Assembly (NCBI GenBank): GCA_016748015.1
Contig: JAAOMT010000239.1
Coordinates: forward strand, 699,940 to 763,939
DNA from: Geosiphon pyriformis uo1
Taxonomy: Eukaryota; Fungi; Glomeromycota
DNA length: 64,000 nt
Direction of reading: 5' to 3'
Position 1 is the stretch's first letter. Every line of letters begins with the position of its first letter. Positions 21,220 to 55,750 of this stretch are shown piece by piece. Under the pieces are notes generated by a model that searched no databases, was not told where the DNA came from, and was given only the letters and a program-made list of their open reading frames with translations. Position numbers and translations under genes: made by a program.

Positions 21220-22644
21220 CCTTTTGTTTCTTTATTTAATTTTCAAAGTTAAATGACAACTTGTATAAACTTTACCCGAATGAATTACTATCCTTGAACT
21301 ATTAACCGTTTCTTTTACGTAATTTTCTGATTTTAATAACTCTACCCTCTCATTTGAAGACTCAGGCCGATATAGCTTTCCCAGCTCATCCAAGTTTTTT
21401 TTTGAAGCTCATTCAACTTCCAGTAAACTTCTTTAGCAGTAGGACGATTCTTAGGATTAGTATCCAAACACTTTTCGATGAATTCAGCAATTGAAGGTGG
21501 AATAAAGGGGGAGGTAATCTTAGGCCTTTGACCATTCAAGATATCCATCACGAGAAAGCGATCATGAAAGAGAGGAGAAAAAAAAAATATATGGAGTAAT
21601 TCCATACATTTCACCAGAAGTTTTAATAGGAGAAAAATTTACGATAGCTGGTGACATTTATAGTTTTGCCATATTATTATGGGAATTGGCAACAGGAATG
21701 CCCGCTAGTGCTGTTGTTTCCGAATTTAATGTTTCATTGTTTGGTGCTGCTGTTTTATTATTTTTAGGTTGACATAATCCGAGGTCTCTAATATTCACAT
21801 AAATTTCAGGATAATCATAATGTAGGATGTTGCCCGAGTGTAGGTAAGAATGAACCATACCAGCAGAATAAATTATAATAAGTCTTTTGGCAATACTAAT
21901 TGGTATCAATAATTTAATACGCCAAGACATGGAATGAAATTCTGTTGATAAATACTTTCGCATGCCTTCATATATAGCAAATTCATCACAATCCCATACT
22001 CGAGTGTTTCAGGGTTTTGCGTAACTTCTTATATTTTAGAGATATAGTCTTGGTCAACAACATTATTAATAAATATAGCTCTTTGAATGCATACCTATCA
22101 GAAGAGAAGAGAAGAGAAGAGAAGAGAAGAGAAGAGAAGAGAAAATAAATAAATAAATATTTAATTCAATTAATTGAACATTTAAATGATTTTAAATAAT
22201 AATAATAATTTAATTACCTCTTTAAAGAGTTCTTCAATGTTCTGCAAAGATGTTTTTATAAATTTTATTGCTACTTCTTCCCATCCATTTCTTTTATATT
22301 TGATTGAAACATTATGTTTTATACTCCACCCATCAATATACGTTACTCTATAAATTGTACCAAATCCTCCCTCGCCAATTTTGTTGATATTCTTTAAACG
22401 TTCCCAAAGGAATCCATTCATAATAAATTAATTAATTTTATTTACGCAAATAGATTGGAAACTTAATTATTTCATCAAATACTTTATTCCCGCTTGAAAA
22501 GTCCTTGTAAAAATTTAAAAAAAATAAGAACTGGCATATCGCACACTTATTCTCTTTATTATTTTTAATGCTCTCTTAACACTCTTCACACTCGTCGCAA
22601 TCATGAGCTTCTGGACGAGTTCTTTTAATTTCAAGTTTTTCCAT
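21220..22644 (-). pseudogene. K4: kinase pseudogene with stops, frameshifts and an internal 130-bp inversion
   Basis: ATG at 22644; CAA>TAA at ~22577; HRD degraded to HSY; segment 21571-21702 reads as kinase on the + strand; (AGAAG)n in the intron at 22100-22142. Confidence 0.9.
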
Positions 22645-23320
22645 GGTTTAAATAAAATCTGAATAACTATTGTGAGAACGTCAATAAAATAGATCTTTTT
22701 TTTTTATAAAAGCTTTTCTCAATAGTAAGACGGGACTCGTGAAGATAGTTAACAAATCAAAATTAAAAAATCACATTTCATATAATTTTTAATTCTCAAT
22801 ATATTTTTCATATATTATAATTTTTGCTACAATTAACCTATTAAAAAGCTTTTAAATTGCAAATTTTTATTTTTAAAAATATTTATTATGGATTTTTGTT
22901 TTTGATTTATATAAAAATGAAAATGAAAATGAAAATAAATGAAAATAATAATTATGAATAAAGAATTTTCACGCGCATTTTTTTTATTTTAATACATATT
23001 GTTATAAATAAGTTTTAAAACATAATAATAAAACATATTGTTGTTAATTTTTTCTTTGTTTTATAAATTTTTAAAACACTCAAAATTATTTTCCTAATTA
23101 TTATATTTTTATAAGTATCAATATAATGAGTTTATTTAATATGTTTAGAAAAGTTTTTTATTTATAAATGCAAATTATTTAAAATATGAGATCTTCGAAT
23201 TGATGTATCAATAAATATCTAAACATTGTAAAATGTCTATTACAAATATTGCTGTAAATTCTTGAAAAAAGGAAAAACATGTCGAGGCTCTTAACGTAAA
23301 AACATTATTTTATTCTAAAT

Positions 23321-26239: not shown

Positions 26240-28698
26240 TTTTTTGAAGAAAAAATAAGGCATGGTTTACTAGTTTTTGCTGACAAGATCTTTTTGTAAA
26301 TATATAGATAATCATTATACAAATTTACTGATATTTCTTAACTTGGAGATTTTAAGAAATTTGTGGATTATTTCCTGATTCAAAGAATGAGGTTTAATGT
26401 TAATAGTTTTATCCAAATGGAGACAATTGTGAACTTCCACCAAAATTTATTTTTTAAAATCATTATTCTTGATTGAAATCCTAACAATATCGGTAAAATT
26501 GGGTTTTTCTTGCTTTTACAAAATTTCATTTTAGCTTTGGTTTGGAGGCAAGCATTTTAGGTAGCCTCAGGATTCATTATAATGAAAATTTCCTATTTGG
26601 TCAATTGATTTTTACGTTAACTTTCAAATGAAAAGATTTGCTCATCAATAAAAAAATATTAATCAATTGCTTGATAATTGCTTATCAGGTGCCCTCTTTT
26701 CTGAGTCCCTCAGCATTAGCATATTTTAGTCAGGAATTCAATAGTTTTTTGATGACATGACCGAGGGCACATTTATTATCAATGCAGTAGCTCCCATCAT
26801 CAATGAAGCTTTTGTTCACGGGCACAATCTTCCAGGATATTCTTGCAGTTAACAAAGTCTTAATCTGCCGCATGCAGAGAAGGAGAGCTTCTAGCTACTA
26901 AAGAAGTGCAGGGCAAAAGCGCAAAGAAAAGGTAACAGCAGCCCGTGGCAAACGCTAGAAGACGGAAGGCATCTTCAACCGCACTTTACTAGTTAAGATG
27001 CATCCCAGCTACCTTAAAAGCAGCTATTGAAGTGATGGATGGGCTTGGCGAGATTTGCCTTTAATATTTGGTGGGATGGAGCAGGCTTCGCATCATTATG
27101 AAACAAGATGTATCACGGAACAAAGGGTGGTTAAAACCCATGACGTTTCAACCAAAAACATCTTTTCGATGATGTTTCGGTTATCTGGGCGAACCAAAGT
27201 TTTGTAGAGCCGTCATGTGTTTTGCCATGCCACTGTTTCCTACTTGGTAACAGCGAAGTCGTCACTTGAAAGGAAAAAATACATCAAGAAAACCTTGTAC
27301 ACTTTACATGGTATGTCAAAAAAAACGCGACTGAAAAATATGTACACCATCAAGTATAGAGATTCTTTGTCAGAAGTAAAATAATCTGTTGCAATCTGCT
27401 ATGATCAAGTTAGGCGTACATTGCTTTGCAATATACAATAAATGTGAATTGATTATTTATTAATGGATATTTATACAGTTGGATTCAATAGTGACCAGTG
27501 CCGAGTAAAATATCTATTTCCTGCATGACCTCAGGAGAGGAACAAAGCTTCATCAAGCAATTTCAGGAAGAGTTTCTGTCCATTACAATCCTGAAATTCC
27601 GGCATTGTATACCTCAGACCCTTTAATCCTCTATGTTACCACACTAGCTATAAGTCTTGGATCTATAGACTTCATTTCGGGTGACAACACAAACTCCCAA
27701 CTCCTCGCCCTTGGCCTTGGTTCCAGCAGACTATTTTCCGACAGTCTTTTGTCGCCTTATGATTCCTCATGTCTGACACCTCATAATCTGCTTAGATAGA
27801 CATCCGAGTTAAGCCTAAAATAGTCAAATCATACATGCAAGCAAAAATTACTTTTTTGATAATAGGAAAAACAGTACAGAAACATATATTTTTATTTGAG
27901 CAAATAAATTTAACTGAAAAATCTTGGATTCATGTTTCGAGTGATTTTTAAGCACAAATATCATTGCATTCGTAAAATATTACAACAAGGAAAATCTCAT
28001 CAGAGTTCGATTCAATTTCCCTTTTATTAAGACAGAAAGAGTTGAGGGTTAACTTATAATGGGAAGAGGCTCCTTTAAACTTCGAAACTAAGCCCAAAAA
28101 CAATAAGTGGCTTATCCGTGGAAGATTAAATCTGATGGTAAACTGGCATATTCTTGAAAATCAAAAAATCGGTTTCCTGGGTTTATAAGACACAAAGACA
28201 AGTTTAAAAAACCTAAGCGGAAAGCAATTCTATTGATCTTGGCTGTCTTTATTTAAAAGCATAAGGAGCGCAGGGCCTGACAACTCGACAAAACAGCCCC
28301 CACATGAAAAGAATTGCGCATCTTTAAAGTAAGATCGATCATCCTCTTAATTTGCGAATTTGGCCCAATCTTCATCTCGCCGCCTGGATAAAATCAAGAT
28401 CATAATAGATTTCGATTCTGGATAAAATCGTGATACAGTAGGTTTCTATTCTGGATGAAATCATAAATTGGAAAATATTAATTTCTATTTTCGGGTATTT
28501 CTAAAGAAACCTTTTTATTATTAGACCTTCTATTGGACAAATAAGGTTTGATTAAACGTTTGAGTAATTTTGGAAAATGTATTTAAAGACACCTTGACCT
28601 TTTTCTTTTTGAGGTATCTGAGATTTTAAAGCCAGATATAACAGCTACTTTTAATTCCTTTGAATATTCTTTTTCTAAATTTAATTTTATCTTGCAAA

Positions 28699-30443
28699 AT
28701 GTCTTCTTCAATTCCTCTTCGTCAACTTGGTAAAACTGGTACCATGATTCCTGCCATTGGATTGGGTTGCATGGTTAATTCATTTTCATTTTTGAATCTG
28801 AAATCAATTCGAGTACACACCATTTCTAAATAGGATTAATTATTTGATAATAGGGAATGAGCGAATTTTATGGAAGTGCTGATGATGCTCAAAGTCTCAA
28901 AGTGTTGGAACGTGCCATTGAATTGGGGTGCGCTTTTTGGAACACTTCTGATATGTATGGAAAGGGACATAATGAAGTATGTACATATTATTAAAATGTT
29001 GAGATTTGTTTAAAAAATAATGTGACCAATTATTATTTGGTAAATCTAGGAATTGATTGGCAAGGTACTCAAAGAACATCGAAATGAAGTGTTTATTGCA
29101 ACCAAATTCGGTTTGTTTTTGAATTTTTTTTGATTGGGTTCTTCCATTTCAATTAGGATATTTCCAATTTAACTATTTTTTTTTGAAGGTGTTGTTCGTG
29201 AAACTAATTACGGTTTCGATGGTAGACCAGAATATGTTCGTGAAGCTTGTGAAAAGAGTTTGAAAAGATTAGGTATTGATCAAATTGATCTTTATATTCA
29301 GCATCGGGTTGATCCTCGAACGTAAATATATTAAATTTCGTAATTGCTAAAATTCAATCTCTTCCGTATATTCTATGAAAGTCTTGTATATCCAATTATT
29401 TGCTTCAATTCCTGCATTTACATTTCTATATAGGCCAATCGAAGAGACTGTAAGGGCACTAGCAGAACTCGTGAAGGAAGGAAAAGTAAAATATATTGGA
29501 TTATCTGAATGCAGCGCAGCTAATCTTCGTCGTGCTTATAAAGTTCATCCAATTGCAGCTCTTGAGGTAAAATATCTGATTTTAGAATGGAGGAAAATAA
29601 GTTTTATTTCTTCATGATTTTTAACTTTCCTTATTTAGATTGAATATAGCCCTTGGACTCTTGATATCGAAGAAAATGGAATCCTTGAAGCGTGTAGAGA
29701 ATTAGGTGTTACGATTATAGCATATAGTCCATTGGGACGCGGGTTCTTAACTGTAAGTCAAGTTTTAGTTCATTAAGACTCTTAACTCTTTTCTTTTAAT
29801 CAGTATGATTAACTTAAAAATCTTTCACAAATGGCAGGGACAATATAGACGATTTTGCTCTAGACGATTACCGAATAACAAATCCACGTTTTGAAGGTGA
29901 AAATTTCCAAAAAAATATCGAACTCGTAAATCAATTTGAGACTTTAGCAAAGAAAAAAGGGATCTCAAACAGTGAACTATGTTTGGCTTGGGTTTTAGCT
30001 CAGGTATGAAAAATGGTTATTTGTTTCTCAAATTAGTGAAAAATATTGTTAAAAGTCTTGAATTTATTTTTACAGGGAGAGGAATTTGTGGTTATTCCGG
30101 GAACTAGGAACATCAAGTAAGTTTTTCTCGAGAATTGACTGTTTATTTGTTTAGTTTAAGTTTCCTGAAACCTCTCAAACCTTTTGCACCTTATTCTAAT
30201 TTATCTAAAAATTTCAGATATCTTGAAGAGAATGTTGGAGCCGGAAAGGTACAATTAACACCTGAAGAAATTGCCGAAATTCGGGATGTGATTAATTCTA
30301 TTAATATTTTCGGGGAACGATATCCTGATATTCTTTTGAAGGTAAACTTTTTTTGGGCATTGCTTGTTTCGTAAAATCCTAGCATTAATCGTAGTGTATT
30401 CTTTTAAATTTAAAATTTTTAGACTCTCGATTCAAGAAATTAG
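28699..30443 (+). pseudogene. AKR copy 2; 8-bp deletion in exon 7 causes a frameshift
   Basis: Catalytic D/Y/K/H intact, but caatata[agtctata]gac is deleted after 29847 relative to copy 3, giving TGA at 29892-29894. Confidence 0.85.
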
Positions 30444-30899
30444 AATTATCAACAATATTGAAACTTTTTTATACTTGAATAGATTAGCTAATTGTAACTT
30501 TTCTTCTTTGTTAATAAATAATAAATAGTTAATTAGCTATTAAAAAGCAGTAATGGCATTGTTATAAAATGAAATAAAAACTAAAAAAAACTTTTTTGGT
30601 TAATGTATGCAGGTGTGAGCACAAGAATTAATAGTTTAATGTCTAAAAAGTTGTAATACTAGTAACCTAAAGTTAAAAGTTGATTTTGCCAAATAAACAA
30701 TCTTATTTTATTTTTAATAACAAGATAGAAGTTGTACAATTAAAAAATTAAAATTTCCCAATTTCGCACCTTTGGGCGATTCTCCTTTTTTTTGTAATGA
30801 TTGAAGATTATCTTGCATACATTGTAATCCTTAACTATAATTCTTAATAACTATTTTGTTCACGTGATCCTCGACGAGAGTGATTACGATGTAAAGGTT

Positions 30900-31890: not shown

Positions 31891-34370
31891 ATAGGTTAAA
31901 ACACGAAGAATAATCTTAATCCTTTTTTACATGCTATTTTAAATTATCTTGTTTAAACTAATTCATAAATTCATAAATTACCACTTCTTTCTGAATCACA
32001 AATAATTTGCTTAATAATGTAACTTTTTTTTAACTGAAGAATTATATGAAAATAAACATGGTTTAATTTTTCTCAATAAACTCAATATATTCAAATTTTA
32101 TTTAAAATGAATTTGCATAAAAGTTTTAAATTTAAATTTGAAAATAAATTAATTAATTTACTAAAATTGATAACTAGTCAATTTTAAATTAAAGATTTAA
32201 ATAATAATTAATAAATATAAAATAATAACATATATTAATTAATAATAAAAATTAAAAAAGCAATTTATGTTAATTTTAACTCAAGTTTCAATTAATAACA
32301 TCAAATTATTATTATTATTATTATAAATTAGTTAATTATTAATTAAAACATTAAATATATGTAATATAATACAAATATATAAAATAATAATTATATTAAA
32401 CCAATATAAATAATAATATATAAATATATATACTTAAATATAACAACATATAATTGTTAAGAAATTTGTTTTTTAAATTTGTTTTTTTATAATATATATT
32501 TTTAATATAAAATTATATTGTATTTAAACTTATAAATTATTATAAAAAATATTATTTAAAATATTAAAACTACTTAAAAATTTTAAAAATTATTTAATAA
32601 TTAAACAAATATAATTAAATTTTTTAAATATATACTTTTAAAAAACATATCTTTTTAAATAAACTAGTTTTATAATAAAAAAATTATTTTTTTTAATTTA
32701 CTTTAATAAAATTTATAAATAATTTTTAATTTTATATATAATAATATATTTAATTATTATTATTTTTTAAAAAAAACACCAAATATTTAAAAAAATTATT
32801 TTAATTTTAATTTTTTATATAGTTTATTACAATTTTTGTAAATTTTTTTGTTTAAAAATATAGTTTTTTAAAATAATTTACAAAATAATAATTTATAAAT
32901 TATTAATATGTTAAACTTTGATTTTTTTTAAACAAAATCAATATTTTTCTCATTTTCTAAAAATAAAACAAATTAAGCAATTATTTACAACTTATTTACT
33001 TTTAATATAAAATATATATATAATTCTTTTTTTTTAAAAAAATTCAGTGAAATTATTTTTTAATTCGATGAAAAAAAAAATGAATTATTTATTAAAAAAA
33101 AAATTAATTTTTTAAAATGTTTGTTAATTATTATTGTTAAATTAAATTTTTTTAAGAAAAACGATCTTATAATATATAATTTATTTATTTGTTATTTATT
33201 TATTTATTTTATTTATTTACTTATTTATTTACAAATATTGTTTGATGCAAAAATTTGGATATAATACATTAATATAATAAATATCTTTTTTTTTGGAAAA
33301 ATCAATATTAAAATTTTTTTATTATATCCCCAAATGATTTTTGTATATAATAAAATTATTATTGTTGAAATTGTTTTTCTGCATAAATTCTAGAAAATGG
33401 TTTTGATTTTTTGCTTAGTATCATAAAGAATTATTTGAGTTTTTAATTTTTTTGAGATTTATTTTAATTTCTAACAAAGAAAAAATAACGATAAATTTTA
33501 TTCTAAATAAATAAATAAATTGATGACTAATTTAAAAGTTATTATATATATTTAATATAATCAATCAGTTAAAAATAACACTGTGAAAAATCATTTTTGT
33601 TTATTGAAAAAAAAATAATGATGATGAAATTGAAAACTTCAATTTTTAATTGGTTTAAAAATAGTGTTAATCCATCAATATTTTAACGACATAAATAAAC
33701 AACTTTTTAATTAATCTATAATCATATTTAAATTTATGATAAAAATTAATAAACCTACCATTTATTAGTAAATGAAATAAAAGGATACTAAATTAAAATA
33801 TGTTTATATTTCATAATTGCCTTGATTATAACTAATATATATATTACAGTCCTAATTATAATGGCGATAGGCATGCATTTATTGCAAGCGCTTCTTCTTG
33901 AAGCTTTTAGTGAACAGAGGGATAAATAAAAATGATGGCGACGGGAATAAATATAAGATTTGATGATATCAAAAATAAAATTTACGTGTCGGCCTTTTTT
34001 GGAATTTAGAAACACGATAAGTTTTGGCCCTCGCAGAATGTGCATCACACGAAGTGTAAATATTTTTTATTAGTATTGTTGTTGTTATATAAAAGAAATT
34101 GAACTATTCATTTAATTTAGGTAACAAGACAATGTGACAATGAGAAACTTGTTTAGCGTCTCTGTGCATTATAGCTACTTAGATTTGTAGCGAATCACAG
34201 TCTGATGAATAAGGTTAATAAATTGATTTGTTACACGATGCGAAACAATATAAATAAGAACTCGCCTTTAGGACAAATAACTATAAACGTACTATCAAAT
34301 AAACCTTTAAAGAAACCCTCTTTGAATAATAACTTATTCACATTTTATCCTTTGTCCGTTATTTTATATC

Positions 34371-35871
34371 ATGGAAAACAAAGAAATTAAAAGAAAAACT
34401 CGTCTATACGCTCATGATTGCAATGAATGTCAACGTTGTCAACAGATTATTAAATATAATTCATCTAATGATTGTAGAGCATGCCAGCGCATGTTTTTCA
34501 AAAAACATTATAAAGACTTTTCAAGTGGCAATGAAGAAGTTGATAAAATAATTAAGAAACTAATCTATATTCGTAAACATAATGAATTGAATTACTATGA
34601 ATGGATTCCATGGGAGCATTTGTCGAATATCAAAGAAATTGCTAGAGGAGGGTTTGGGATAATTTATAAAGCAACCCTAATTGATGGATTAATATATGTT
34701 GGAAGTATAAAACATCATGGTTCAATGGAATATGAAAGATATAAAAAAGAGATGGAAGTAGCAATAAAAATTATAAAAACAAACAGTTCAGAAGTGTTTA
34801 AAGAGGTAACAAACTATTTATATTTATATATTAATTTAATTCACATTTACCTATTATTTATTTACTATATATATATTATCTATTTATTTAATCTTTTTTT
34901 ACACTGTGTTTTGATAGTTAAATATTCAAAGAGCTATGTTTATTAATAACGGTGGATATAGAAGTTCTTATGTCTCTAAAATATTGGGGATTACGCGAAA
35001 CGCTGAAACACTCGAGTATGGAATTGTGATGGAGTTTGCCAGACATGGAGATATGCGAAAATATTTATCAACAAATTTTCATTCTACGAGTTGGAAAGAT
35101 AAATTAGAGTTCGCGTCTGATATAGCTTCTGGACTTTCTTCAATTCATTCTTCTGGTATGGTTCATCGTGACCTACATTCGGGCAACATCCTACAATTAT
35201 ACGCTAATGTGGTAACTATTGGAGACCTCGGATTATGTCAACCTACAAACAATGAAGCAAAAACAACAACAGAGGAAAAAAAGTTATTTGGAGTGATTCC
35301 ATATATTCCACCAGAAGTTTTAAGAGGAGAAAAGTTTACAACAGCTGGTGATATTTATAGTTATGGAATGTTATTATGGGAATTATCAACAGGAAAACCT
35401 CCTTTTCATGATTGTCCTCATGACCAAATCCTTATAATAGCTATTTTAAATGGTCAAAGACCTAATATTACCTCCCCATTTATTCCACCTCCAATTGCTA
35501 AACTCATTAAAAGGTGTTGGGATGCTAATTCTAAGAATCGTCCTACTGCTAGAGAACTTACAGAAAAGTTTATGGAACTTCGATATTTGTATAATTATAA
35601 TAGGTTTAAAAGATGGATACACTTTGGGAAATCAGATAAACTAAGAAAAATAGCAAAAAATGACTCGACAACAACAAAGATAGCAATTCATCCAGAAGCA
35701 GTTTATACAAGTCGTCTTTTAACTGCTCAAATGGTCAATTTTTCAACAGGTTTGTTTATTTAATTTATAAAATGATTCATTTTATTTGCTTTAATTACAT
35801 ATTTTAACTTTCTTTTTAAAAAATTAGTCTATTTACCTGAGAGTAACAAAGTTGAAGAAAATTTTGAATGA
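34371..35871 (+). CDS. K6: TKL-like protein kinase, apparently intact, 3 exons
   Basis: All subdomain motifs in frame; same exon structure as K1; promoter 34040-34370 nearly identical to 7645-7990. Confidence 0.9.
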
Positions 35872-35997
35872 ATTTTTCATGTGTAATCGTTTAAATAAGT
35901 TTAAATAGATCTAATCATATTTATTTTTTTTTAATCATGATTTTTTAATTTTAATTATTTATATATTTAGCGAAATCATCTTTAATAAAAATATATA

Positions 35998-38724
35998 TGT
36001 CATGAGTTGGAACAGGATTTGAGTTGATTTGGGATTCTAATTCAACTTGAGTTAATTCGGAATCTTTAATTCAACACTGTGTTGATTCCGAATCAACTCA
36101 ACCAATCACATTATTTGGTTAATTGGCCAGTAAAAAGTTTTCCTTTCATTAGCCAATCAAAAAAATCAAAGTTTCGATATTTGACGCGTTTTTTTATGGC
36201 TTCCCAACATCATTTATCATCGATAAATTATGAATGGCTTACTCAAGAAACATTTTCTGATCTTCTTAAAAGCTATTTATTAGCTAGAAGTAAAAAAAGA
36301 TAAGCCAAAACTTTGCTTTCTCAAGATTACATAAACTAATGCATTAAGATATTAAAAAATACTTCTGAAGGAGAAAACTTCGATTTTAAATTAAAGTATT
36401 GGATACGCACTATCTTTTATATTGCACAAGTCGAAAGACAAGATATACTTTATCTTAAAAAACTAGTTTGTCTGAAAGAAAAATTATATGAAAAACTATG
36501 TGAATTTCATTTAGAAATAGGTCATAAAAGAATGAGCAAAACTTATAATGCAGTATAAAATATTAATTTAATTTTTTATATAAATAGATATTAATAATTT
36601 TTTATTTATAGATTAAAGATAAATATGCTTGAATGCCTAAAAATTTAGTAAAACAGTTTTGTTTTTGCTGTACTAAATGTATTATATAATAATCTTTAAC
36701 TCAACCAATAGCTGTAAATCCGATTTTAGCAAAAGACTTTATGTGCCATTTATAAGCAGACTTGGTTGATATGTATAATTGACCAAATAATTCTTATAAA
36801 TATATCTGTCATGTTTGGAATTATTTTACAAATTTTTTTTGAACTGCAGCCCTATTTTTTAAAGAAGCAAAAGAAGTAACAAGCTTTCTTTTTAAACTTT
36901 TTAACACATTTAAATCTCTAATTATTCTTTAAACTAATAATAGAAAAGAGTTTACAGCTAATATAATCAAAAAATTAACAGAAATATGACCAACTATTTA
37001 TATTATAAATGAATACCTAAGACATTCTCAATCTCAAAAATTAATTGAATAAGCAAATAATATACTTTAACAAAAACTTTCAAAATTAATAAAGAATATA
37101 AAAACTAATAATTGGTTGCATAATTTATATTAAATAACATGTAAAAAACATTATTTTTATATTAATTGAATTATTAAACAATAACTAATTTATTTTTATG
37201 TTTAAATACAATAAATACAAAAGTTTTATAATTATTGGCTTTTTACTTTATCAAATAATATTTGGAAAAAAACTTTTCATCAATTATTTTTTTTTTAAGT
37301 TTTTTTTTAAACAATTAATTATGCAAGAATAAAATTTTTTTAATAACTTAAATATAAAGCCAGCTAATAAAAAACCAATTCAACAGAAAATAAAAAGTAA
37401 TAGTAATTAGCAACAAAACAAATTACAGCAACAAAATAATTAGTAATAACAGCAAAATAACTAGTGACAAAATAACCAACAGCAACAACAAAATAATAAG
37501 TGACAAAATAATTAGTAACAACAACAATATAATATATAACAAGATAATTAGCAGCAACAAGATAATAAGTAATAAGATAACCAGCAGTAACAGCAAAATA
37601 ATTAGCAACAAAATAATAAACAACAAAATAACCAGTAGTGGCAACAAGATAACCAGTGACAAAATAATAAACAACAAGATAATTAGTAATAATAGCAAAA
37701 TATCTAATAGTTATAACAAAATAACTGGAAGCAGTAACAATAACTATTAAATCAGTAGCAACAATATAACATAGTAAATAATATTAAAAAAAATTAAGAA
37801 AAATTGAGTCATAAGTAAAAAAACTAAGCAATCTCTTAAAAAATATTGGTATTTACTTTAATAACTTTTATATTTCTTCTGTTATAATTTCAAGAAATAA
37901 GATAATATTTTTTATTATTTGCATTTTTTAATATTATTTTGTATTAATCTCATATTTTTTAATAGAATAATAATAACCAGAATAATATGCTACATAATAT
38001 TATTAATTTTTCTACTAATTATTATAAAATACACCAAATTGCTTATAATCAATATGTTAATAATATTAAAATAATACAAAAAAAAATGCTGTGTAAAAAT
38101 ATAAATTTTATGTGAATTGGAATTTTAAAGATCAATTGTTTAAGTACTAATAGAAAGTTTTTTATCTGTAAAATGATCAAAACTGTTAATAAAAAATCAT
38201 ATAAACTGAGATACAAATTAAGAATATTAAAAAAATTCTTATCACACAATAAAGTTAATACTTACTAAAACTACTAATTTCCAGAATTATGAAAAATACC
38301 AAACACTTTTATTTTTTATATAAAATAATCTTATACCAAAGTTAAAAAAAAAAAACAGATTATCAATACAATTATAAAAAAAACTGTAGAATTAATTATT
38401 GTAATTGCAAAAAAACTGGGATTTTATGTAGTATACAATGTTATAATAATAATAGTAATACTTGTAAAAATTGTAACAAATAATTAGAATTATTAAAATT
38501 GATAATAAAAAAATATGTCAAATATCAAAACTTTAATTTTTTAATTGGTTAATAAAAAGAAAACTTTTTACTGGCCAATTAACCAAATAATGTAATTAGT
38601 TAAGTTAATTCAAAATTAACACTATGTTGAATTAAAAATTTCGAATTAACTTAAGTTAAATTAGAATTTCAAATCAACTTAAATTAATACTAAATAAACT
38701 CAAATTTTGTTTTAACTTATAAAA
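35998..38724 (+). mobile_element. Ginger-type (integrase-like DDE) DNA transposon with ~200-bp TIRs, inactivated
   Basis: Left TIR 35998-36197 starts TGTCATGAG; right TIR ~38505-38724 is its mutated reverse complement; TATA on both flanks. The empty site is seen in the K8 flank (reverse complement of ~63030-63125). Confidence 0.88.
36196..38483 (+). pseudogene. Ginger / KRBA2-like integrase-transposase pseudogene
   Basis: HxxxxH...CxxC zinc motif, ADLVDM, IL*TNNRKEF (LQSDNGREF-like), RHSQSQKLIE*AN, Q/D/N-coding ~21-nt repeats (37420-37770) and Cys-rich end CNCKKTGILCSIQC..CKNC. Many C>T/G>A-type stops. Confidence 0.85.
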
Positions 38725-38973
38725 TATATATAAAGTTAATAATTTGTGATAAGTTATAATAAAAAATTATAAAAAAATAATATACTTTTATGTTATCTTA
38801 TTTTTATTTTTATTATTATTTTTTTAATATTTATAATATTAATTAAAACATTTAACTATTTTGTTTTTATATTTTTTTATATTAATTATAATAATTAAAT
38901 TAAATTTATTAATATTAATATAATCAATAATTAAAACACAAATAACAACAACAAAAACAACAACAACAATAAC

Positions 38974-39006
<33 letters not shown>

Positions 39007-39489
39007 TTTTTATAATATTTAATATAACTTTGTTTTAAACAACATAAGTAAATTTTATTTAAGCCAACATTTTTTAAAAAATGAAATTATTACCAAATTA
39101 ATAAGTAATTGATTTTTTTAACAAAAATTACAATTAAAATTATCTTTTAAATACATAATTTATTTATTATTATATTTAAAAAAATATATTTTTTTTTTTA
39201 TTATAAATAATTTTATATTTAAAATTGTGTTAATTTAAATGATTGATTGATTGATTCATTTAATTATGAACAGAAATTAAATTATTAAAATCCTTAATTT
39301 ATTTATTTAATTATGTTTTCTGGCTAAATAATTATTTTTTACACTATTTTTACTATTAAAAAAATGAATTAAACACAAAAAAATAATTATAAGTAATAAA
39401 TTTAAATTTATTTTTCAAAAAAACATTGAAATTTTTTTTAATAACAATATTAATAACTAATTTTAATATTTATTTATTTTTTTTATTTT

Positions 39490-42400
39490 ATTTATTAATG
39501 AGTACAGCCCAACCAAAGTCTAGAATAAGTTACAAAGAAAAGTAGCCAACTAAACATGATTCACGCATTTGCTACATGTAACCAGCCACTCGAGCCAATC
39601 AAGGCAACACTATACACTTATAGAAACACTAACCCTATAAATAGCATCAGACAAAAACAAGAACCTATTCTTAAAACTGAAACCGACATCAAGAGAATCC
39701 AACACACCAGTAAGATGAACCATGTCAGCTAAAAGAAGCAGAGCACCTGTACCAAGAGCACTGGTCACAACAATATCATCACCAATCAAACCACTTCTCT
39801 CTATGTCAGACCTGAACTTAGTTCTAAAAAGCCAGAGGTTCATCCTATGACTCTTAGCCAAATGACAGACGAAATCCACTACCACAAAGGCCACTTTCTT
39901 CTTGTCATTGAGAGAAACAATGGCCTCATCCATCCAACTCTTGAGAACAAATCCCTTGCAAAAAACCGAATACAAACCAACATCAGACACCCCCAGAGAG
40001 AGATCTTGCAACACAAAAGACGGCAACAGTAGATTAGGACCCATCAGAGTTTTCCACAAACCACCAAAGTCACCCAAAATATCTGACCACACAGAAGCAT
40101 TCTTAACACAAGTAAAGCCATGATTGGAGAGTTCCATATCACCACAAAATAGACATGACACACCAAGGTAATCTTTATTATACAGCCTCTTTCAAACAGC
40201 AACAGGCAACTTGAAATGAACAGCTTTCATGAAATACATATGAAGAGCAGCAGTGGCTCAACACATATTCCCAGAAAGCATATGAGAGTCAGGATACCAA
40301 ACTAGAGCAGTATTATTCCAATTGACAACCAGACCAAACAAACAAGACAAAACCCCTTGGCCAGGACCCACCTCCCACTGAAACTTACAAATGGAACAAA
40401 AAATGTCATGTACAAAATGGCAGGCATTACCAGAAACTGGCCTGCCATCAGTCAGCCATAACATTATCAGCAATGCCAGCATGACCTTTGACTTTGATCC
40501 AGTAGACAGTCAAATCTTTGGATTTAATCAAATCAACCATATGGTGTCTTTTTATTCAGCAACTATTGCGACAATCCAGCTGCAAGAGACCCAATTCGGC
40601 CACACATGCATCAATAGCTGCTTGACTATCTGTGTGCAAAGCCACTGAAACAGAGGCAGAAATGCACTCCAAAGTCAGAGCAACAGCCTGTAATTCAGCC
40701 AGAGTCAAAGACAGCACACCATGTACCTCTACTCCTAAACCTTTGTTCAAGCTAGGAAAATAAGCAGCAGCACCACACGCCACCTGAAACGTACTCAAGC
40801 CTTTAAGAGAACTGTCAGTATAAACATCAATCTCATCAGCCCACAATCCATGAATCTCTTCACAAATATCAGCAAAAGATGTCAAATCTAAAACACTAGC
40901 ACAGACAGAAACTAAACTCACAGGAAGGGGAGCATGCAAACAACTATTCAAGTAAGTGGAGGCCTTCAAAAACCATAAAGGCACGGGGCCTCTAGAACCA
41001 AGTTTTTTCCATCGGCAAAATGTACGCCAACTAACAACAGAACCATTTTTGTTCAGAAGTTGGTTACCATATGCCACACCAGCAATTTTCAAGGAGCAAA
41101 CCACATTGAAATACAAAAGATCACCCAATACCAATGACATTGGGAAACAGCCAGGAAAGCAAAAGACACAGAAAAGCCTGTTATCCAAAGACAGCTTGTT
41201 GTCAAGAAATATACAAACCACATCCACTAGAAAATTGTTTGAAGTGTTCACTTTTAGCTTAACAGGATATTGAAGAGGATTCAGCGGAGTCCAGCACAAA
41301 ACCTGCAAATCCAAAAATCAATGTTCAAACAGTTGACCAAGAATTCCAGAAGAATTTGCAAATTGCACAATAGAAGCTACGTTGCATTTAGCTTGCAACT
41401 GTTCAAAAGATTTCAGTCCATAAAAAGAGAGGTGATACAACACCTCATTGGGAAAGTCTCTCGGCAAATTGGCTTTCGACCTAAGACTTTTTCTAATGAG
41501 AACATCCTATTTTAGACAAACAGCTTTGGAAACAAAACTAAACTGTGTCTGATAACTGACTATGGGCTGCAAAACAGCCAAAACCAGATAAGAGAATTGT
41601 TTATCAGAGACAGCCTTCCAGAGAACCATATTTGAGAAGAACCTAATATCTGAATTGGCTTTGGCAAGACTCGGCTTAGACAAACCATTGGTGGACAAGA
41701 AAATACCCAAATATCGATGACTCACACCAGAATTGGCAACAGCAATAGCCTGGCCGTTAATGGATAAAACAGGAACCCCCATTTTTTTGTTGATAGGAAT
41801 GGCAACTGTCTTCTCATTGTTTATGTTAATGTCATTGATGAGGAAAAACTCGCTGACTACATTAAGAATGTGTTGTATAGAGGCTTGCCCATTTCCCACC
41901 CAAATAGTGTCATCAACAAAGACACCAGCCATGAAAAAAGAAGTCATACTCCCACTAGTCTCAATCCTTTCAGTCTTTGTCACAAAGTTCAAATTGATCT
42001 GATAACTACACAAATGATCTTGTCTCGCAACTTTACATAACAAGAGGTCGTAAAAAATTTTCCATAGAAGAGGTGAGAAAACTTTACCCTGATCCAAACC
42101 ATCAAGAACTTTGTATTTATCAGAAAGGCCAAAATCTGTCATGACTCTGTTAAAGTGATTGTTGTGAATGTTGCCAAAAAACTTGATGAACTTGCCACAC
42201 ATTTTGATACAGTATAAACTAGCTTCCAAATGAGGCCAACCAACAGAGTCATATGCTTTGCACATGTCTTAAAAAACCAGCCAAAGTTCATGGCCTTTTT
42301 CCAAAGCATCCTCCACAATTGAACCCACAGCTGAAATTGGTAACTGAGTGGAAGTGCCTTTGAGGACAGAAAAGTTGTTACCATGGAGAACATCAAACTT

Positions 42401-45400
42401 ATTACAAGCAAGAGAAATCCTGTCTGAGAGAACTTTTGACAGAATCTTTCTGGCCATCTCAATCAATACAATAGGCCGTGTATTTGACAAAACACTATTC
42501 CAATCATAAGGCTTAGGAATCATGGACACCCAGGCCTCTTTCTAATAGACTGGAACATTACCAAAATGCAAACAAGAGTTCAGCAAAGACAACAAACACT
42601 CCAAAACCAAACAGCCAGCATGTTTTCAAAGTTCATTGGTAATACCAGACAAATCAGCAGCTTTGCCATTAGGAAGATTGCTTATAACTGAAGACATCTC
42701 ACACATGGTAATATTACATATGACCAAACTAAAGACACTATCATTAACATAAGCCAAAAAGGCATATTGTTGTGCCCAGAGACCAGACAGGACAGAAAGA
42801 GCATTCTGCTTTCTGGTCCAATTAACCATGATGTTATTTATTTTGAGCTTTATTTCATTAAGTTCCAAAATAAGAGAATCACCAACAACCAAATGGTCTA
42901 AAACAACTTTGCAAAAAGATTGTTCCAAGATGCTCTGAATTATCTCACCTTTGTCCATATTGAACTTTTCCATACACTTATCAATTACGTCTCTGATAGC
43001 AGATCTTTTGGCCACCTCAGATTCATAATATTTGGATTTTCTATATTGCTTTCTAACCTTTGCAAGATGACTTATTAAGCCAGCAGAACCCACATCATCC
43101 CTGACCATACCAAAAACTTTGGAAGCTTCAGAAGGGTCAACTTTAAACCAAGTGTCAGCCAGACGATTAAAGCCTAACATATCATCCAGTCTTAGCACTT
43201 TTAATAACTTGGCAACCAACAGCTCTAACCTGGAAAATTTAGAAAAAAGTCTATTCTTAGCACAATCAAATTCACTATACCAATGTCTTAAAAAAATTTT
43301 TTCAGCAGAAGCAGTCATGGCTTCAGTTAGCACCTCCCACATTCCATCTAAGTTGCCACCATCTTCAGCCATTTTGAACCTATCCAGAGAATCCAAAAGC
43401 GCACATTCAGAAAGTTTTTTAAAATGTGCCCACTTTTTCTCATTAGCATCCTTAATCTTAAACTTCCAGCAATCTTTATTAGCATGCTTGTGGATGCTGT
43501 TCAAACAAGCATCCAGAAGACCACCCAGCCCAATAGACATTGAGACAGCCAAGTGATCCATGTTAAAAAATTCTGAGACAGAACTAACATCATGATCCAC
43601 AACAGCTGAAATCAAAGAGTTACTAACTAGAATATAGTCCAAAATTCTGCTAACACCTCTTGAATTGCTCCAAGTAAGAATTCTAGCTAGAGAGTGGCCA
43701 CCAAAAACATTAACTAAACCCAAACCTAAACATTTTTTAAGACTTGCCCCCTTGACTGAACAGTTTTCATTGAAGTCCTTACCCAAAACAACAAAAGAAC
43801 TTTTGTTGACAGTATCAGCAATGAATGAATTAATAACAGAAGCCTGAGCAAAATAGTTACCACCAGACACACAGGCATAAAGCCCAATGACAGACACAGA
43901 AAGCTTGTTCTTAAACAAAAGACAAATCAAAAGAACTCTGCCCTTCACCTTCTTAACTTTGGAAACATGACGAGTTAGAGAATTGTTCACAAAAATGGCC
44001 ACACCAGCCCCACAAAACCCAACATCCAGACCAAATGTAAAAACCCAAACACCCTCAAACCTTTTCATGATCCATGGTTGTGAACTAAAACACAACTTGG
44101 TTTCTGTAACAATCGAGATCAAACTACCAGATTTCTTATGCCAGTGAAAAATGTCTTTTTGTTTTGCAGGATTGTTCATTCTCCTAACATTACATGTGGC
44201 AATTTTCTAAATAAAACTGGTTATTGTGATGAAGAAATAACTGAAGAACCTGAGCCAGCACACAACTGATCCAACTTAGCCAAAATCAAACCAATAGAGA
44301 TGTCGAAGACAACCAACTTCAATTCCAGACCACCAACTTTGGAAGTCAGGACTTTGGAACTACTTAGACCCAAGAGTGAATTGGTAACACCTGAAGAGAA
44401 AGAAGTAGGCTGGACAAAAAGATCATCAACTGCCATGTCAAAATCCAAGTCAGAGTTTACAACCACAAGAGAAACAGAGGTTGGGAACTGAGAAACAATC
44501 ACAGAAGGAACCATTTGAGAGGAAGGCGCCAAGGGTGCTGAACCAATATTGTCAAAATGAGAAAAAATGTTTAAAATTTGACCAGACAAAAGCTCGACAA
44601 AGCATTCCAGAAGTGCTAAGTGAGCACTCAAAGGAGAATTGATCACAGGTAGAGGGGAAGGTGCTCTACCTGAACTCAAAGCACCAGAAGACAGAGAACC
44701 AGAACCAGAACCAGCACAAAAACCATGAGAGACTAAAGTAACTGAGACCACTTGAGCCCAAGATTTGCCACCAAAGGCAACAGGATGAGAGATTGATACA
44801 TTCTTCTTTGCATACAATTTGGCCAGCTGGTGACAAGTATCTAGGTTGGCAGGCCTTATAAAAAACTTTGAAGATTTGAGAGCTGACGCAACCTCAGCAT
44901 CACATTCCAAGGCAGAATGACCAAACTTCTTACACCATTCACAGCGAACCAAATCCAGCCTAGTCCATGAGAGTTTTACACCACCAAAGATTGGCTCCGT
45001 GTGAAAAGCTGACTCTAAAACCTCATCAGAATCAAAACAAACAACAGCACAGCAGACCCTATTACCAGTCTCCAATAACCAATTTATAACACAAGTTTTT
45101 CCACCAGTCCCTTCAAGAAGATCCCCAAGATTATGAGCAGTAGTTCTCACCGGCAAAGTAAACAAAAGCACCCTGAACTGATCTCTAAAAGCCCAAGTTT
45201 CATGATCGCCCACCACCATAGCCACACGAACCGAGTCTTTACCAATTAGGAAGGACCACCTAACAGCCAAAGACACAGCCTGTTCTAGTTCAGCAAATTC
45301 TACCACAGCCTTTTGCCATAAACCAATTAACTGGATTTTGATCGACTTAATTTCTCCAAACTCAGATACTGCGGCAACGATCATTTTCTTTGGCATATTC

Positions 45401-46222
45401 ATGGGAATTTCTTTGATTACTACAGTCTGATCTGAGCGAATTACTTGTCTCTTAAGATCACTGTTTACAATAATGTTATTTTCTCTGACCAATGACATGA
45501 TCTTTTCCATGCTTTCTGATGAAGTAAACATTGATCAGATGATCCCTTCAAATTTTGAGGGGATAGTGGCCCCCCCAAAATCATTGATTCCTGAAAATAA
45601 TTTTCTTATAACTTGAGTTTTGGCTGTTGCCAATTTCCCTTCTATAGCCAAAAAATTAATGTCCAAAGTGAAAAATTTTTTCACAGCTACTTCCACCTGA
45701 GTTTTAATGATTTTGGGATCAATACATGCCTTATCCAAAGAGAAAGACTTACAGGAAAGAAGAAAAATCTCTTCTTCCTCCTCCATGTCATAATTAATAA
45801 AGTCAAGAAGAGAGCCAATAATCGCACCATTATTGAAACACTTGGCTTGTGGTGTATTCATCTTGGAATCAGATATTCCTTCACTTTCAGAAGCCTTCCC
45901 ATCAGTATTTATGCTATTAAACTGCTCGACTACTTGACCAGACCCATTATCATTGAGAGTTGCACCATTACTTGATAGCTTAGTACCACTGAGAGGTTTC
46001 TTGATCTTATGACTTGAACCACTACCAACTAAACCAGAAGTTGGAACTCTGGTCAACCTTTTTTTAGCACCAGTACCACTTATAGGAGCAGCCAGATCAA
46101 TAACAAAAGGATTTGTTTCTTGTAAAGTGTTGGATGACAGTATGAAATGACAGAAAAAAAACTTCTTTCAAATTATGACTCTTTTTCAAGAATTTGGGAC
46201 AAAGGAGAGAAAGAAGTTTTTT
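39490..46222 (-). mobile_element. LINE-A: full-length non-LTR retrotransposon (ORF1 RRM-like + CCHC; ORF2 APE-RT-RNase H-zinc finger), inactivated
   Basis: CEWCKKFGHSALEC; IATCNV, IVTETKL, LDYILVS (APE); KAYDSVGW, QG..SPLLW, FVDDT (RT); VYTDSS..AELQA..TDSQA (RNase H); CLFCGDMELSNHGFTC. In-frame stops are TGG>TGA/TAG and CAR>TAR. Confidence 0.95.
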
Positions 46223-48300: not shown

Positions 48301-48935
48301 GTTAAATAATATAATTATTTATTAATCTGTATCTATTCTAATAAATATATTATTATTATTATTATTGTTGTTGTTGTTATTATTATTGTTATTATTATTG
48401 TTGTTTTTATAATTAAATTAAAAAACTGATAAAAATATCACAAATTAAAAAAAAACTTTATTTTTTAATATTTTTAACTATTTAAACAACAATAATAAAA
48501 TTAATTAAAAATTTTTATAATAGTAATAATAATATTAAAATTAATTTTAATATATTATTTTAAAAAATTTTTAATTAAAAACTAAATTAAATAATATATA
48601 AAATTTATTAATTTATATTTTTGTTTTAAAATTTTTAACTTAATTTATATAATAAGTATTTTGTAATTAAAAATATGTAATAAATAATTAAAAATATATA
48701 ATAAGTAAACAAAAATACAAATTATGCTTAAAATTAACAAATATTAAATTTATTAATTAATAATTTAAGTTATAATTATATTTATTTAAATATTTTAACA
48801 AAATATAATTTAATTATAATTTATTTTATACAATAAAAATATTACATAATAATTATAGTATATTTTTTATATATAATTAATCATCTAAATTTACATTAAA
48901 AATTATATTATATTTTTTATTATTATTATTATTTA

Positions 48936-51900
48936 ATAAGTGAGGTCCACACACAACCTAGCACTATACATCAAAGAAATGATCTAAACTAGGCATGAAT
49001 CATGCACTTTTTACACGTGACCAGCCACTCAGGCCAGTCAGGACAACATTATGCAGCTATATAGACAGAAGCTGAATCACCAATGCCAGAAAAAAACATA
49101 CAAGACTTGCAAAAACCAAAATGCATACCAAAAGCTTCATCAATACCAAGCAAATCAACCACACCAGCGGAAAGCCGTGAAGTCAAACCAGAGACCGAAG
49201 TAAGAGATGAACCATCCAAAAGAATCAGTCTGTGCTTTTCCATATAAACACAGTGTTTGGCCTGAACCAACCAAATCTCATCTCTAAAAGCGAGGCCAAG
49301 AGAACACGCAAAATTAACAACCTCCAAACATGCCACCTTGGGATTATGGAAGATGGAGACAGCTTCACCAAACCATTCATCAAAAACAAAACCCTTATGG
49401 AGGGCCATGGATACTGAGGACCCTGAAACACAAGACGACAACAACTACAACAAAACCGAAGAAGAGACAGAAGAACCAGAAAGTGTTTTCCAAGTGTCCA
49501 TGTGAGAATTCAACAACTGACACTGAGCAGAATCATTGACCTTACAAGAAAAAACATGATCCAACATCTCTACATCACCACAATATAGACACAACACACT
49601 GGAATAAAGTCTATTATAAAGCCGTTTTCGAACAGCCATAGGCAACCGATGATGCAAAGCCTTCATAAAATAAGAGTGCGCATTAGCCAAAATCTTGCTA
49701 GTGAAACTGGTGGTCATATGCAAATCAGGATGCCACACCAAAGAAGAGCAGGACCAATCAACATTAGCACACAAGTTGACAGGCAAAAATTTAGAACCAG
49801 ATTCCACCTCCCAACGTGCATGACACATGGCACAAAAAATGTCACAGACAAAGTGCCTTGAATTGCCAGAGATAATGTTGCCATCAGCCATCAAACAGTG
49901 TTCATTCAGGCGAGGAGGAAAAAACCAGTCAGAAACAGAAACAGCACTGGCAATTACATTAGCATGCTCATTTCTCGAAATCTCAGAATGATCTTTGACT
50001 TTGTGCCAGGTAACTTTTAGGCCCTTACTGTATATAACATTGGCAATGTGCTGACACTCAACCCAACACCAATTACGGAAATCAAGAACCACCAGACCCA
50101 ATTCCGATTTGCAAGCATCCAAAGCAGACTGACTATCCGAAAATAAATGTACATTACTAAAAACAGGAACACACTTGAGAGCCAACGCAATTGCCTGTAA
50201 TTCAGTCATGATAGATGACATCAACCCAAACACGCCAACATCCAAACCCATACCAATGTCCTCGAAAAAAGCCGCAGCACCCACTTCACAGCCAACTGTA
50301 TCCAAATTTCTCAATGACCCATCAGTGTAGACTGATAGCACCCTTGCATTGACTTGTGAAAGACAATCGCAGACAAACACAAAACCAAAAAAACCCAGAA
50401 TGTCCAAGAAACCAATATTAGCAAGAAGAGGGATGTGGGCAGGAGAGGAATCTTCTCCAGCAAGAAACACAGCAGAAAGTCTGAACCACTCAGGAATAGG
50501 GCCACAGGGGTCCAGTTTCTTCCATCGCTTAAATGTGGACCAATCAAAAACAGTACCATAATAATCACAAAGTTGGTCTACAAAGGCCACATAATACCGC
50601 CAAAGCAAGAGGAGACACCTAGAGAAAACTGATTCACCCAAAACAGTCAGCATGGGCATCCCACTATCAGCACGAAAAGAATTGGGAAAAGATCCACCCA
50701 AGGACAATTTGCAATTATAAAGCACGCGAACCAAACCCACCAAAAAATTATTAGAGGCACTAACATGAATGCGAACAGGAGAACTCAACGAATGAATAGG
50801 GTGCCAACATAAAACCTGCAAGTCATGAGACCTATGAAAGAACAAATGTCCCACAATCCCACCAGAGTTGGCAAAATCAATAAGAGAAGCAACCTTGCCT
50901 TTAGACTGAATTTGCAGGAAAGATCTTAAACCATAAAAGGAGAGGTGGTGAATCGAATCACTAGGAAAATCAAGCGGAAGTCCAGATTTAAGCTTTAGGC
51001 CCTTATGAATCATAGCATCCCACTTGTTGCAAATGCCTATAGAAACAAAGCTAAATTGTGTCCTGTAGCTAATTATAGATTGGAGAACTGCTGAAACCAA
51101 ATATAAGAACTGCTTATCTGAGATAGCCTTTCTAAGAACCAAATTTGTAAAAAAATGAACGTCTGAATGTGCCTTAGCTAAACTGGGTTTGGAAAGACCT
51201 TCAGTTGACAAAAATATGCCCAGATACTGATGGAATTCACCTTTTTTGGCAACAGAGATAGGGGAACCACTAATGAAAAGAGCGGGATTTCCAACTTTAC
51301 AATTGATAGAAATAGCTACTGTCTTGTTATTGTTTATTAAGATGTCATTAATCTGAAAAAACTCGCTAGCAACATCCAAAATGTGTTGAGTTGCACTCTG
51401 ACTACTGCCAACCCAAATTGTATCATCAACAAAGGTGCCAGTGGCAAAATAGGAAGAAAGCCCAGTTTGCGATTCGACACGACCACTCTTGGAAACAAAA
51501 TGAGAAATTAGCCTATACCCACAGACACTCTCCTAACACTTGACTTTGCACAAAAGGGGATCATAAAAAATGTGCCACAGGAGGGAGGAAAAAACTTCTC
51601 CTTGATCTAAACCATCATGGACACAATAACCATCTGTCAAACCAAAATCTGTCATGACTTGATTAGTGCAACCTCTGTAAATGCTGCCAAAAAACCGAAT
51701 AAACTTGTCACACATTTTAATTCTGACCAAACACTTCTCCAAATGCTCCCAGCCAACTGAATCATACGCCTTCTTCATATCCTGCAAGACCAGCCAAAGC
51801 TCTCTGTTTTTTTTCAGGGCATTTTCAACAACCAAACCAATTGCAAAAATAGGGGACTGTGTTGTCGTACCTTTCAAAACCAAAAAATTGTCACCATAAA

Positions 51901-54900: not shown

Positions 54901-55750
54901 CATGGGAATTTCCTTGATTACTACAGTCTGATCTAAGCGAATTCCTTGTCTCTTAAGATCGCTGTTTACTATGATGTTATTTTTCTTGGCCAATGATGCA
55001 GCCTTTTCTATGTTCTCTGATGAAGTAAACATTGATCTGATGATCCCTTCAAATTTTGAGGGAGTAGTGGCCCTCCCAAAACCGTTGATTTTTGAAAACA
55101 ATTTTCTGATCAATTGAGTTTTTACAGTCACCGATTTGTCTTCCACAGCCAAGAGATTAATATCTAATGCAAAGGATTTCCTAACAGCAACTTCCACCTG
55201 AGATTTAACAATCTTGGGATCCAACCACATTTTTTCTAAAGGAATACCAAGAGGAGGGGGGAGAGGACTGCCATCATCATTATTCATGTTATAATCTAAT
55301 AAACCAAGAGAGGAGCCGCAGTCCAAATTATTCTTAACTCTCTTTGCCTTAGGAGTAGTTGCAGCCAAGCCAAGAAGAGAACCATCATTACCACCAGCCA
55401 AGATGCCACCAGTAACACTGTCACCAGAATCACTTTCCATATCTGAGTATTGACTCCCACCAAAAATAGGTTTGGCCAAAGCAGCTTTGTTTCTATTACC
55501 AGACTGGTTCATATGGCGAAGGAAAATTCTTTTTTTTTAAGAGGAAGGACCACCAACAGAACCAGAAGAAGCACCAACAGGAGCTTTCTTATTCGACATA
55601 CTACTGCCAAAAGCAGCTTCCGAGTTCACAATAAAAAGATTATTTGTAAGAGAAATGTTGAAGTACAGCAAATGAAAAACAAAAAAACTACTTTCAAAAT
55701 AAGACTTTTTTTCAGGAATTTGAAATGAAGGAGAGAAAGAGTTTTTTTTT
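48936..55750 (-). mobile_element. LINE-B: full-length non-LTR retrotransposon with RNase H, inactivated; (TAA)n tail
   Basis: Same domain order as LINE-A. ORF1 from ~55599; ORF1 stop / ORF2 start overlap ATGA at 53736-53733; LQDMKKAYDSVGW, FVDDT, VYTDGS, CLYCGDVEMLDHVFSC; several stops and frameshifts. Confidence 0.95.

Follow-up and report, generated by a model that had tools for sequence, protein, structure and literature searches.

Hypermutation of the type called repeat-induced point mutation (RIP) counts as a trait of the Dikarya, and essentially of the ascomycetes. In its canonical form, that of Neurospora crassa and other Pezizomycotina, it strikes any duplicate longer than a few hundred base pairs and about 80% identical, its changes are almost solely C>T and G>A, one-way and on both strands, half or more of the cytosines are lost, and transposons are inactivated, with AT-rich tracts, copy-to-copy variation and leakage into unique DNA as the visible outcome; the heterochromatin branch of RIP in Neurospora can spread past the repeat. 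In Zymoseptoria tritici a Dim2-dependent, mitotic, RIP-like process changes C to T at CpA and spares CpG (PMC8016269), and in Pucciniomycotina hypermutation occurs strictly at TpCpG, and no homologue of rid was found (Horns et al., 2012; PMC3318451). A kingdom-wide screen of 2025 recovered RIP-like signatures in ascomycetes only (PMC12543289), RIP signatures were not detected in Gigaspora and Mucoromycotina (PMC8647823), and RIP-index signals have been reported with caveats for Entomophthorales (PMC11105155), while for the Glomeromycota we found no published report of such hypermutation. The stretch analyzed here, 64,000 nucleotides of the Geosiphon pyriformis uo1 genome (contig JAAOMT010000239.1, positions 699,940 to 763,939; hereafter the window), contains a dead Ginger2/Tdd-type DNA transposon of 2,727 bp (window positions 35998–38724, plus strand), whose two ends record a one-way, lineage-specific hypermutation with a modest preference for CpG and for cytosines preceded by a pyrimidine, which is not canonical RIP.

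The element is enclosed by terminal inverted repeats (TIRs) of about 205–225 bp, the left arm at 35998–36198 on the plus strand and the right arm at 38505–38724 on the minus strand, and it is flanked by TATA target site duplications (TSDs) at 35994–35997, inside an A-TATA-T target, and at 38725–38728. Matching TSDs surround other copies of the family, the 4-bp duplications being matching or reverse-complement in 7 of the 8 elements checked and off by one base in the remaining one (L037). Since the TSDs are intact, each copy is an independent insertion, and the two arms of an element are therefore equally old. In an alignment of the left arm to the reverse-complemented right one, the latter carried T or A at 28 of 62 comparable C/G sites (C>T at some 16 and G>A at 13), with no reverse transition at 139 A/T sites, four transversions and one 21-bp indel. 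The one-way difference described by an earlier reading of the sequence alone, together with its counts and its TCA, TCC and TGA classes, is thereby confirmed. That reading had also taken the left arm as close to ancestral, and rightly so, since with respect to the inferred ancestor of the family only 2 of 65 C/G sites were changed in the left arm as compared to 31 of 69 in the right (Fisher P=4e-9), a 15-fold difference.

The same polarity was found throughout the family. Forty copies were set on one coordinate system, and their ancestor was inferred by two independent rules, one favoring GC and one unbiased (two-of-three majority of the light copies, defined below), which agree. GC content varies between 11% and 33% among the copies, and the loss of C/G amounts to 50–67% in heavy copies and to 9–16% in three light ones. 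With the GC-favored ancestor, nine copies yielded 2,734 C>T/G>A changes vs. 160 reverse ones and 114 C>A/G>T, and with the unbiased one the changes amounted to 0.513 per C/G site vs. 0.011 per A/T site, with transversions at 0.011 per site. Over about 40 copies the per-site C>T rate was approximately 47 times the T>C rate, and 88 sites showed C/G in GC-rich copies and T/A in others, while the opposite pattern did not occur. Changes are thus almost solely C>T/G>A, one-way and on both strands, as in canonical RIP. Mutated sites were largely independent between copies (phi 0.1–0.3), which indicates that the changes postdate insertion. Private divergence at ancestral A/T sites was the same in light and heavy copies (0.0077 per site), whereas the C>T rate parameter was 0.14 in the former and 0.79 in the latter, about a six-fold difference. 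The C>T load is therefore not proportional to copy age and not clock-like.

Concerning sequence context, in the TIR pair the mutated fraction per available site was 17/26 at TpC, 6/12 at CpC, 3/6 at GpC and 2/18 at ApC, with odds ratios of 4.3 for TpC against the rest (P=0.0097), 5.8 for YpC against RpC (P=0.0036) and 1.07 for CpA against the rest, and 5 of 10 CpG mutated. The statement in the sequence-only reading that GpC mostly survives does not hold on these figures. A logistic regression over heavy and intermediate copies, bootstrapped over sites, gave odds ratios, with A at the same position as the reference, of 2.5 for a preceding T (95% confidence interval 2.15–3.05), 1.9 for a preceding C and 1.2 for a preceding G, of 2.2 for a following G and 0.76 for a following T, and of about 1.3–1.5 and about 2 for a pyrimidine at −2 and at +2, respectively. 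In heavy copies the CpG trinucleotides were mutated in fractions of 0.76 (TCG), 0.73 (CCG), 0.70 (GCG) and 0.66 (ACG), the non-CpG ones in fractions of 0.70 (TCA and TCC), 0.46 (GCA) and 0.40 (ACA), and 40–48% of ApC and GpC sites were changed; a 3' A was about as low as a 3' T (0.525 vs. 0.498), and the majority of changes lay at non-CpG. The preference is accordingly for CpG and for cytosines with a pyrimidine on their 5' side (T>C>G~A, some 2–2.5-fold), not for CpA. The TpC bias is real but modest, and CpG is at least as mutable per site. The 5'-T/pyrimidine preference claimed from the sequence alone thus survives normalization in the TIR pair, in about 40 copies, in the window's other deserts (where TpC/ApC drops from 1.27 to 0.56 and CpA/CpT stays at 1.20) and weakly in a second, retroelement family (TpC vs. 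ApC odds ratio 1.65, P=0.02; CpA 1.01), even though it is only about 2–2.5-fold, and the observation that few changes fall at CpG holds for absolute numbers. In sum, the changes are neither mainly at CpG nor context-free, and reversals are rare.

These features separate the process from those described elsewhere in fungi. Canonical RIP differs in its CpA preference, and standard RIP indices flag even the heavy copies only marginally, so that the signal may have been missed earlier. As in Pucciniomycotina, a 5' T and a 3' G both raise mutability in a RIP-like process outside the ascomycetes, but TCG here barely exceeds the other CpG trinucleotides, TCA reaches comparable values, and the effects are broad and roughly additive rather than restricted to TpCpG. 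The Z. tritici process shares with that observed here the limitation of C>T changes to transposon or heterochromatic DNA and differs in the sites it favors, CpG and YpC being preferred in our case and CpA not. Light copies behaved differently from heavy ones, as just a following G stood out (odds ratio 3.1, vs. 1.07 for a preceding T) and CpGs mutated on both strands were fewer than expected (7 observed vs. 17, P=6.5e-4). The CpG-only effect and the deficit of double hits suggest that two processes are involved, with ordinary methyl-CpG decay, which is CpG-limited and spares the second strand once the CpG is lost, as the background seen in light copies and a separate hypermutation superimposed on it in heavy ones.

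The position of the mutated tract within the element is equally informative. From the left end of the window copy, the mutated fraction per 150 bp was 0.02, 0.09, 0.23 and 0.26, and then 0.41, 0.37, 0.46 and 0.53, defining a protected edge with a gradient at 35998–36600. The stop codon of a TKL-type protein kinase gene (34371–35763, plus strand) lies about 235 bp upstream of this protected end. An analogous profile emerged when 10 copies were pooled, rising through 0.10, 0.22, 0.40 and 0.49 to a plateau of 0.54–0.65 over a gradient about 500 bp long. In 7 of 9 non-light full copies a single end was nearly unmutated (0.04–0.16) and the remainder of the element was mutated to 0.5–0.65, and in 5 of 9 elements the load of the two TIR arms differed significantly (P from 7e-4 to 4e-9). 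Protected ends mostly face DNA of 30–40% GC and mutated ends mostly DNA of 7–17% GC; over 30 ends, mutation load and flank GC were negatively correlated (Spearman rho −0.55, P=0.002). The 28 one-way transitions between arms of the same age can therefore be attributed to the protection of the left arm beside the kinase gene, an explanation that the sequence-only reading had missed. Within the first 450 bp from the protected ends of the 10 copies, loss of C on the inward strand exceeded loss of G (0.14 vs. 0.07, 0.25 vs. 0.16 and 0.43 vs. 0.36), a difference that may reflect the context composition of the TIRs.

At the opposite side, the hypermutation does not stop at the end of the element. A paralogue of the kinase downstream region (63330–62550, reverse complement) spans the insertion point and served as an empty site; two of the flank paralogues were near-identical to one another to the left of the insertion and aligned poorly to its right. 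Over the 75 aligned bp of the right flank nearest to the element, 10 of 17 G/C were lost with respect to the paralogue, with no reverse change and one transversion (binomial P=0.002), and over about 210 bp losses of G/C were 18 vs. 3 (P=0.0015), so that a non-transposon segment at 38729–38930 appears invaded. The left flank was symmetric (C/G losses 3 vs. 4, with 18 transversions), without a C>T excess beside the kinase. Taken together, the loss in the right flank and the spared left end indicate an offset tract, which begins within the element on the side of the gene and runs out of it at the opposite end. Flank dependence and extension into the flank also exclude the editing of excised transposition intermediates.

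Some copies are affected and others spared, and younger nested insertions are untouched. Two heavy copies contain GC-normal nested insertions with sharp edges: a 3.5-kb retroelement copy (L031:745-4264), next to which the host element stands at plateau (0.58–0.67), and a 1.3-kb element (L047:643-1951) with perfect 53-bp TIRs and 30–36% GC, untouched by hypermutation and apparently a very young insertion. Hypermutation thus looks episodic or copy-specific rather than a standing property of an AT-rich neighborhood. Other copies of the retroelement-like family present in the window show one-way C/G loss (e.g., 76 vs. 15). Duplicates other than transposons behaved normally: in the window, pairs of 0.9–2.2 kb and 88–96% identity had transition/transversion ratios of 0.6–1.2 and no directional bias, and in a polarized triplet the C>T rate was 2.1 times the transversion rate, as compared to roughly 50–80 times in heavy transposon copies, although by transversions the duplicates (0.013 per lineage) were at least as diverged as the copies of the transposon. 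It follows that duplication by itself is not the trigger, another point in which the process departs from canonical RIP, together with its one-sided edge protection and its occurrence in a lineage outside Dikarya.

As to the enzymes, the loci with a DNMT domain comprise one DNMT1-like gene, one short DNMT-only gene with broken paralogues, and two DNMT2-like genes. The short gene (G000:C657:788241-789400, L070) has no recognizable N-terminal regulatory domains, and the solved structures that match it best are those of a bacterial enzyme of the Dcm type, of DNMT1 and of CMT; a broken paralogue lies about 32 kb away (C657:820713), another DNMT locus is at C371:423510, and DNMT pseudogenes occur on C702 and C666. 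Candidate DNA methyltransferase genes, of a family that the sequence-only reading proposed to search for, do exist, although their presence does not identify the mutator. Deaminases of AID/APOBEC type, also evoked, gave no match in a six-frame exon-wise genome search with PF08210, PF18778 and PF14441, a search that cannot prove absence and whose controls for two of these families were also blank, and five loci with the CDA fold (PF00383) are consistent with housekeeping enzymes. Exon-sized, sub-threshold matches to the Tet_JBP dioxygenase were found at 8 loci (e.g., C727:119977 and C692:1518538), none adjoining the DNMT locus examined.

The reading that we favor, to which we give about an even chance, is that of an episodic deamination aimed at silenced transposon copies and bounded by neighboring active chromatin, possibly linked to methylation or heterochromatin. 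On this reading a Ginger2/Tdd cut-and-paste element inserted and then underwent one-way C-to-T change on both strands, which removed about half of its C/G in a tract that starts roughly 300–600 bp in from the left end, takes in the right end and reaches at least 100–200 bp into the host flank, while the left TIR escaped in the protected edge beside the kinase gene. The chemistry may be an enzymatic or methylation-dependent deamination of cytosine, and its targeting could have been episodic, aimed at silenced copies and held in check by the state of the neighboring chromatin. RIP-like in its outcome, the process would be closest to the heterochromatin- and DNMT-linked (DIM-2/Dim2-type) branch of RIP, and it resembles neither RIP driven by homology alone nor editing of the APOBEC type. 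In Z. tritici the process is DNMT-linked and not meiotic, and a process of this kind would suit a rarely sexual fungus. The interpretation given by the sequence-only reading is partly supported, and the uncharacterized genome-defense mutator or non-CG methylase that it proposed for this lineage may be the source.

Several observations weigh against the favored reading. The neighboring high-copy transposon (39370–46056) retains 40% GC. Flank GC does not determine protection in any simple way, as the heavily mutated ends of L018 and L024 adjoin GC-normal DNA and L033, a light copy, is flanked by AT-rich sequence. The nested GC-normal insertions show that location in an AT-rich domain is insufficient and favor a copy-specific or time-limited trigger over a standing chromatin domain. 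Moreover, the polarity of the leak depends on a single paralogue, private counts amount to just 10–20 per copy, so that a small difference in age between light and heavy copies is possible, and the ancestor is an inferred one, though both rules concur.

Among the alternatives, true homology-triggered RIP would require a premeiotic RID-type DNMT that pairs duplicated DNA and acts only when a largely clonal lineage passes through one of its rare sexual cycles, with a relaxed, lineage-specific context and with later insertions escaping. The bimodal C>T load despite similar divergence at A/T sites, the untouched younger insertions and the plateau of heavy copies at a C loss of 0.5–0.67, which a process ending once copies diverge would produce, would all fit, as would leakage into the flank, which is known for RIP, the existence of a short DNMT-only gene, and the RIP-index signals outside Dikarya suggested for Zoophthora (PMC11105155). 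We nonetheless consider it unlikely, because duplicates of adequate length and identity, by transversion divergence no younger than the transposon copies, show a normal symmetric spectrum, a family of at least 40 copies keeps 40% GC, and both ends of an element should behave alike if homology drew the boundaries, yet one is protected while the other leaks; a CpA preference is also missing. Episodic action agrees with the bimodal load and with the young insertions left untouched, which do not indicate timing in the sexual cycle. A single-strand DNA cytidine deaminase, AID/APOBEC-like or of another fold, could instead edit transposon DNA exposed during replication, transcription or repair. APOBEC3A/B have strong TpC specificity, and APOBEC3 editing in general shares with our data the one-way C>T change and the 5' pyrimidine (T, then C), with the pyrimidine context extending here to −2 and +2; a small but consistent deficit of strand switches (5–10% below expectation, mean z −1.26 in 37 copies) and an 11% excess of adjacent CC/GG double changes go in the same direction. 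The deficit, however, is too small to count as evidence for single-strand editing, and pyrimidine-run context could explain it; strands are intermixed without long single-strand tracts, the preference is weak, with RpC still heavily mutated and CpG equally favored, the outcome depends on the flank, and the exon-wise searches, unable to prove absence, detected no APOBEC-like gene. The likeness to an APOBEC3-type signature put forward by the sequence-only reading appears overstated, and a deaminase of this kind appears quite improbable as the cause.

Damage by sunlight or ultraviolet (UV) light at dipyrimidines, poorly repaired in the silent chromatin of a soil-surface fungus, would produce C>T changes at YpC sites and methylated YCG sites. 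In its joint preference for YpC and CpG the spectrum is similar to the signature of solar UV, and protection beside genes could mean better repair there. Such an origin is nevertheless highly improbable, as cytosines without an adjacent pyrimidine are still 40–70% mutated (ACA, GCA, ACG and GCG, values above), a 3' T reduces mutability instead of raising it, and a rate difference of about 50–100-fold over a few hundred bp exceeds the usual heterogeneity of repair; CC>TT doublets, taken as a UV hallmark, were set aside as their excess is just 11%. Passive decay, i.e., a general AT-biased pressure plus deamination of methylated CpG acting for longer on older copies, would accord with a very AT-rich genome with deserts of 8–14% GC, with CpG as the most mutable context and with the double-hit deficit in light copies. 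It is largely refuted by the 15-fold difference between TIRs of the same age, by the equal divergence at A/T sites in light and heavy copies, by the near-normal C>T rate of nearby duplicates and by the prevalence of non-CpG changes, and is hardly credible as the main cause. Thermal breathing of AT-rich DNA as a self-reinforcing main cause was also rejected, a 5' A being the least mutable neighbor.

A broader form of the favored reading, which we put forward only tentatively, is that Glomeromycotina possess a transposon-directed cytosine-deamination defense of their own, independent of duplication and guided to single copies (perhaps by small RNAs or silencing marks), bounded by active genes, recognizable by its CpG and pyrimidine-C signature and responsible for building the 8–14% GC deserts. 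If true, this would represent a second, mechanistically distinct origin of RIP-like genome defense outside Dikarya. The footprint is massive, has its own context preference and is unexplained by duplication alone, and it would change the reading of transposon control, AT-rich compartments and gene-island boundaries in an ancient symbiotic lineage. The marginal response of standard RIP indices may explain why it was overlooked. Paired TIRs, or long terminal repeats, provide an internal age-matched control with which spectrum, edges and leakage are measurable genome-wide.

The assignment of the element to the Ginger2/Tdd group rests on several characters. Ginger2 elements prefer RTATAY targets, have TIRs of 50–180 bp and encode a Gypsy-integrase-like DDE transposase (Bao et al., 2010; PMC2836005). 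The present family likewise has long TIRs, TGTNR termini (TGTCA...ACA-type in the window copy, TGTCA/TGTTA across 29 aligned family ends), a 4-bp TSD in an RTATAY-type target and an rve DDE transposase. The integrase core remnant of the window copy, with stop codons inside, lies at 36755–37055 on the plus strand and was recognized through the homologous open reading frame (ORF) of the better-preserved copy L033 (1059-1370), which matches PF00665 above cut-off (1e-8). The family differs from Ginger2/Tdd in its slightly longer TIRs, a Cys-rich C-terminal tail, an internal array of 36-bp tandem repeats and the condition of its copies, all of which, as far as seen, are broken. The array (37357–37740, plus strand), within the coding region, contains 10 copies of the repeat family D1, an 11th member lying beyond the element at 38892–38995; its length differs between copies, and repeat-rich ORFs are present in other members of the family. 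At least 40 TIR matches and about 30 copies or fragments were counted in the genome. The N-terminal ORF, from broken copies only and the place where an H2C2 zinc finger would be expected, gave no Pfam match, and nor did the C-terminal ORF with its CxC-type tail (L033:2188-2613), which may be a DNA-binding or chromatin-reading module of this Ginger lineage.

Around the element, the window alternates gene-like stretches of 30–42% GC with deserts of 8–14% GC. The neighboring transposon (minus strand) forms the right-hand boundary of the AT-rich stretch and has at least 40 near-full copies of 87–90% identity, with GC kept at about 40%; neither of the two largest ORFs, of 517 and 436 aa on the minus strand, had a Pfam match. 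The retroelement-like family lies at 48900–55500, with matches to RNase H and RRM. A run of N occupies 9150–9197, just downstream of a kinase paralogue. TKL-type kinase genes, with a normal substitution spectrum (transition/transversion ratio about 1), form a paralogous cluster in the window (7700–9150, 12700–14250, 21740–22660, 34070–35990 and 63100–64000), and further duplicated segments are found at 15268–17669, 28240–30525 and 59887–62069.

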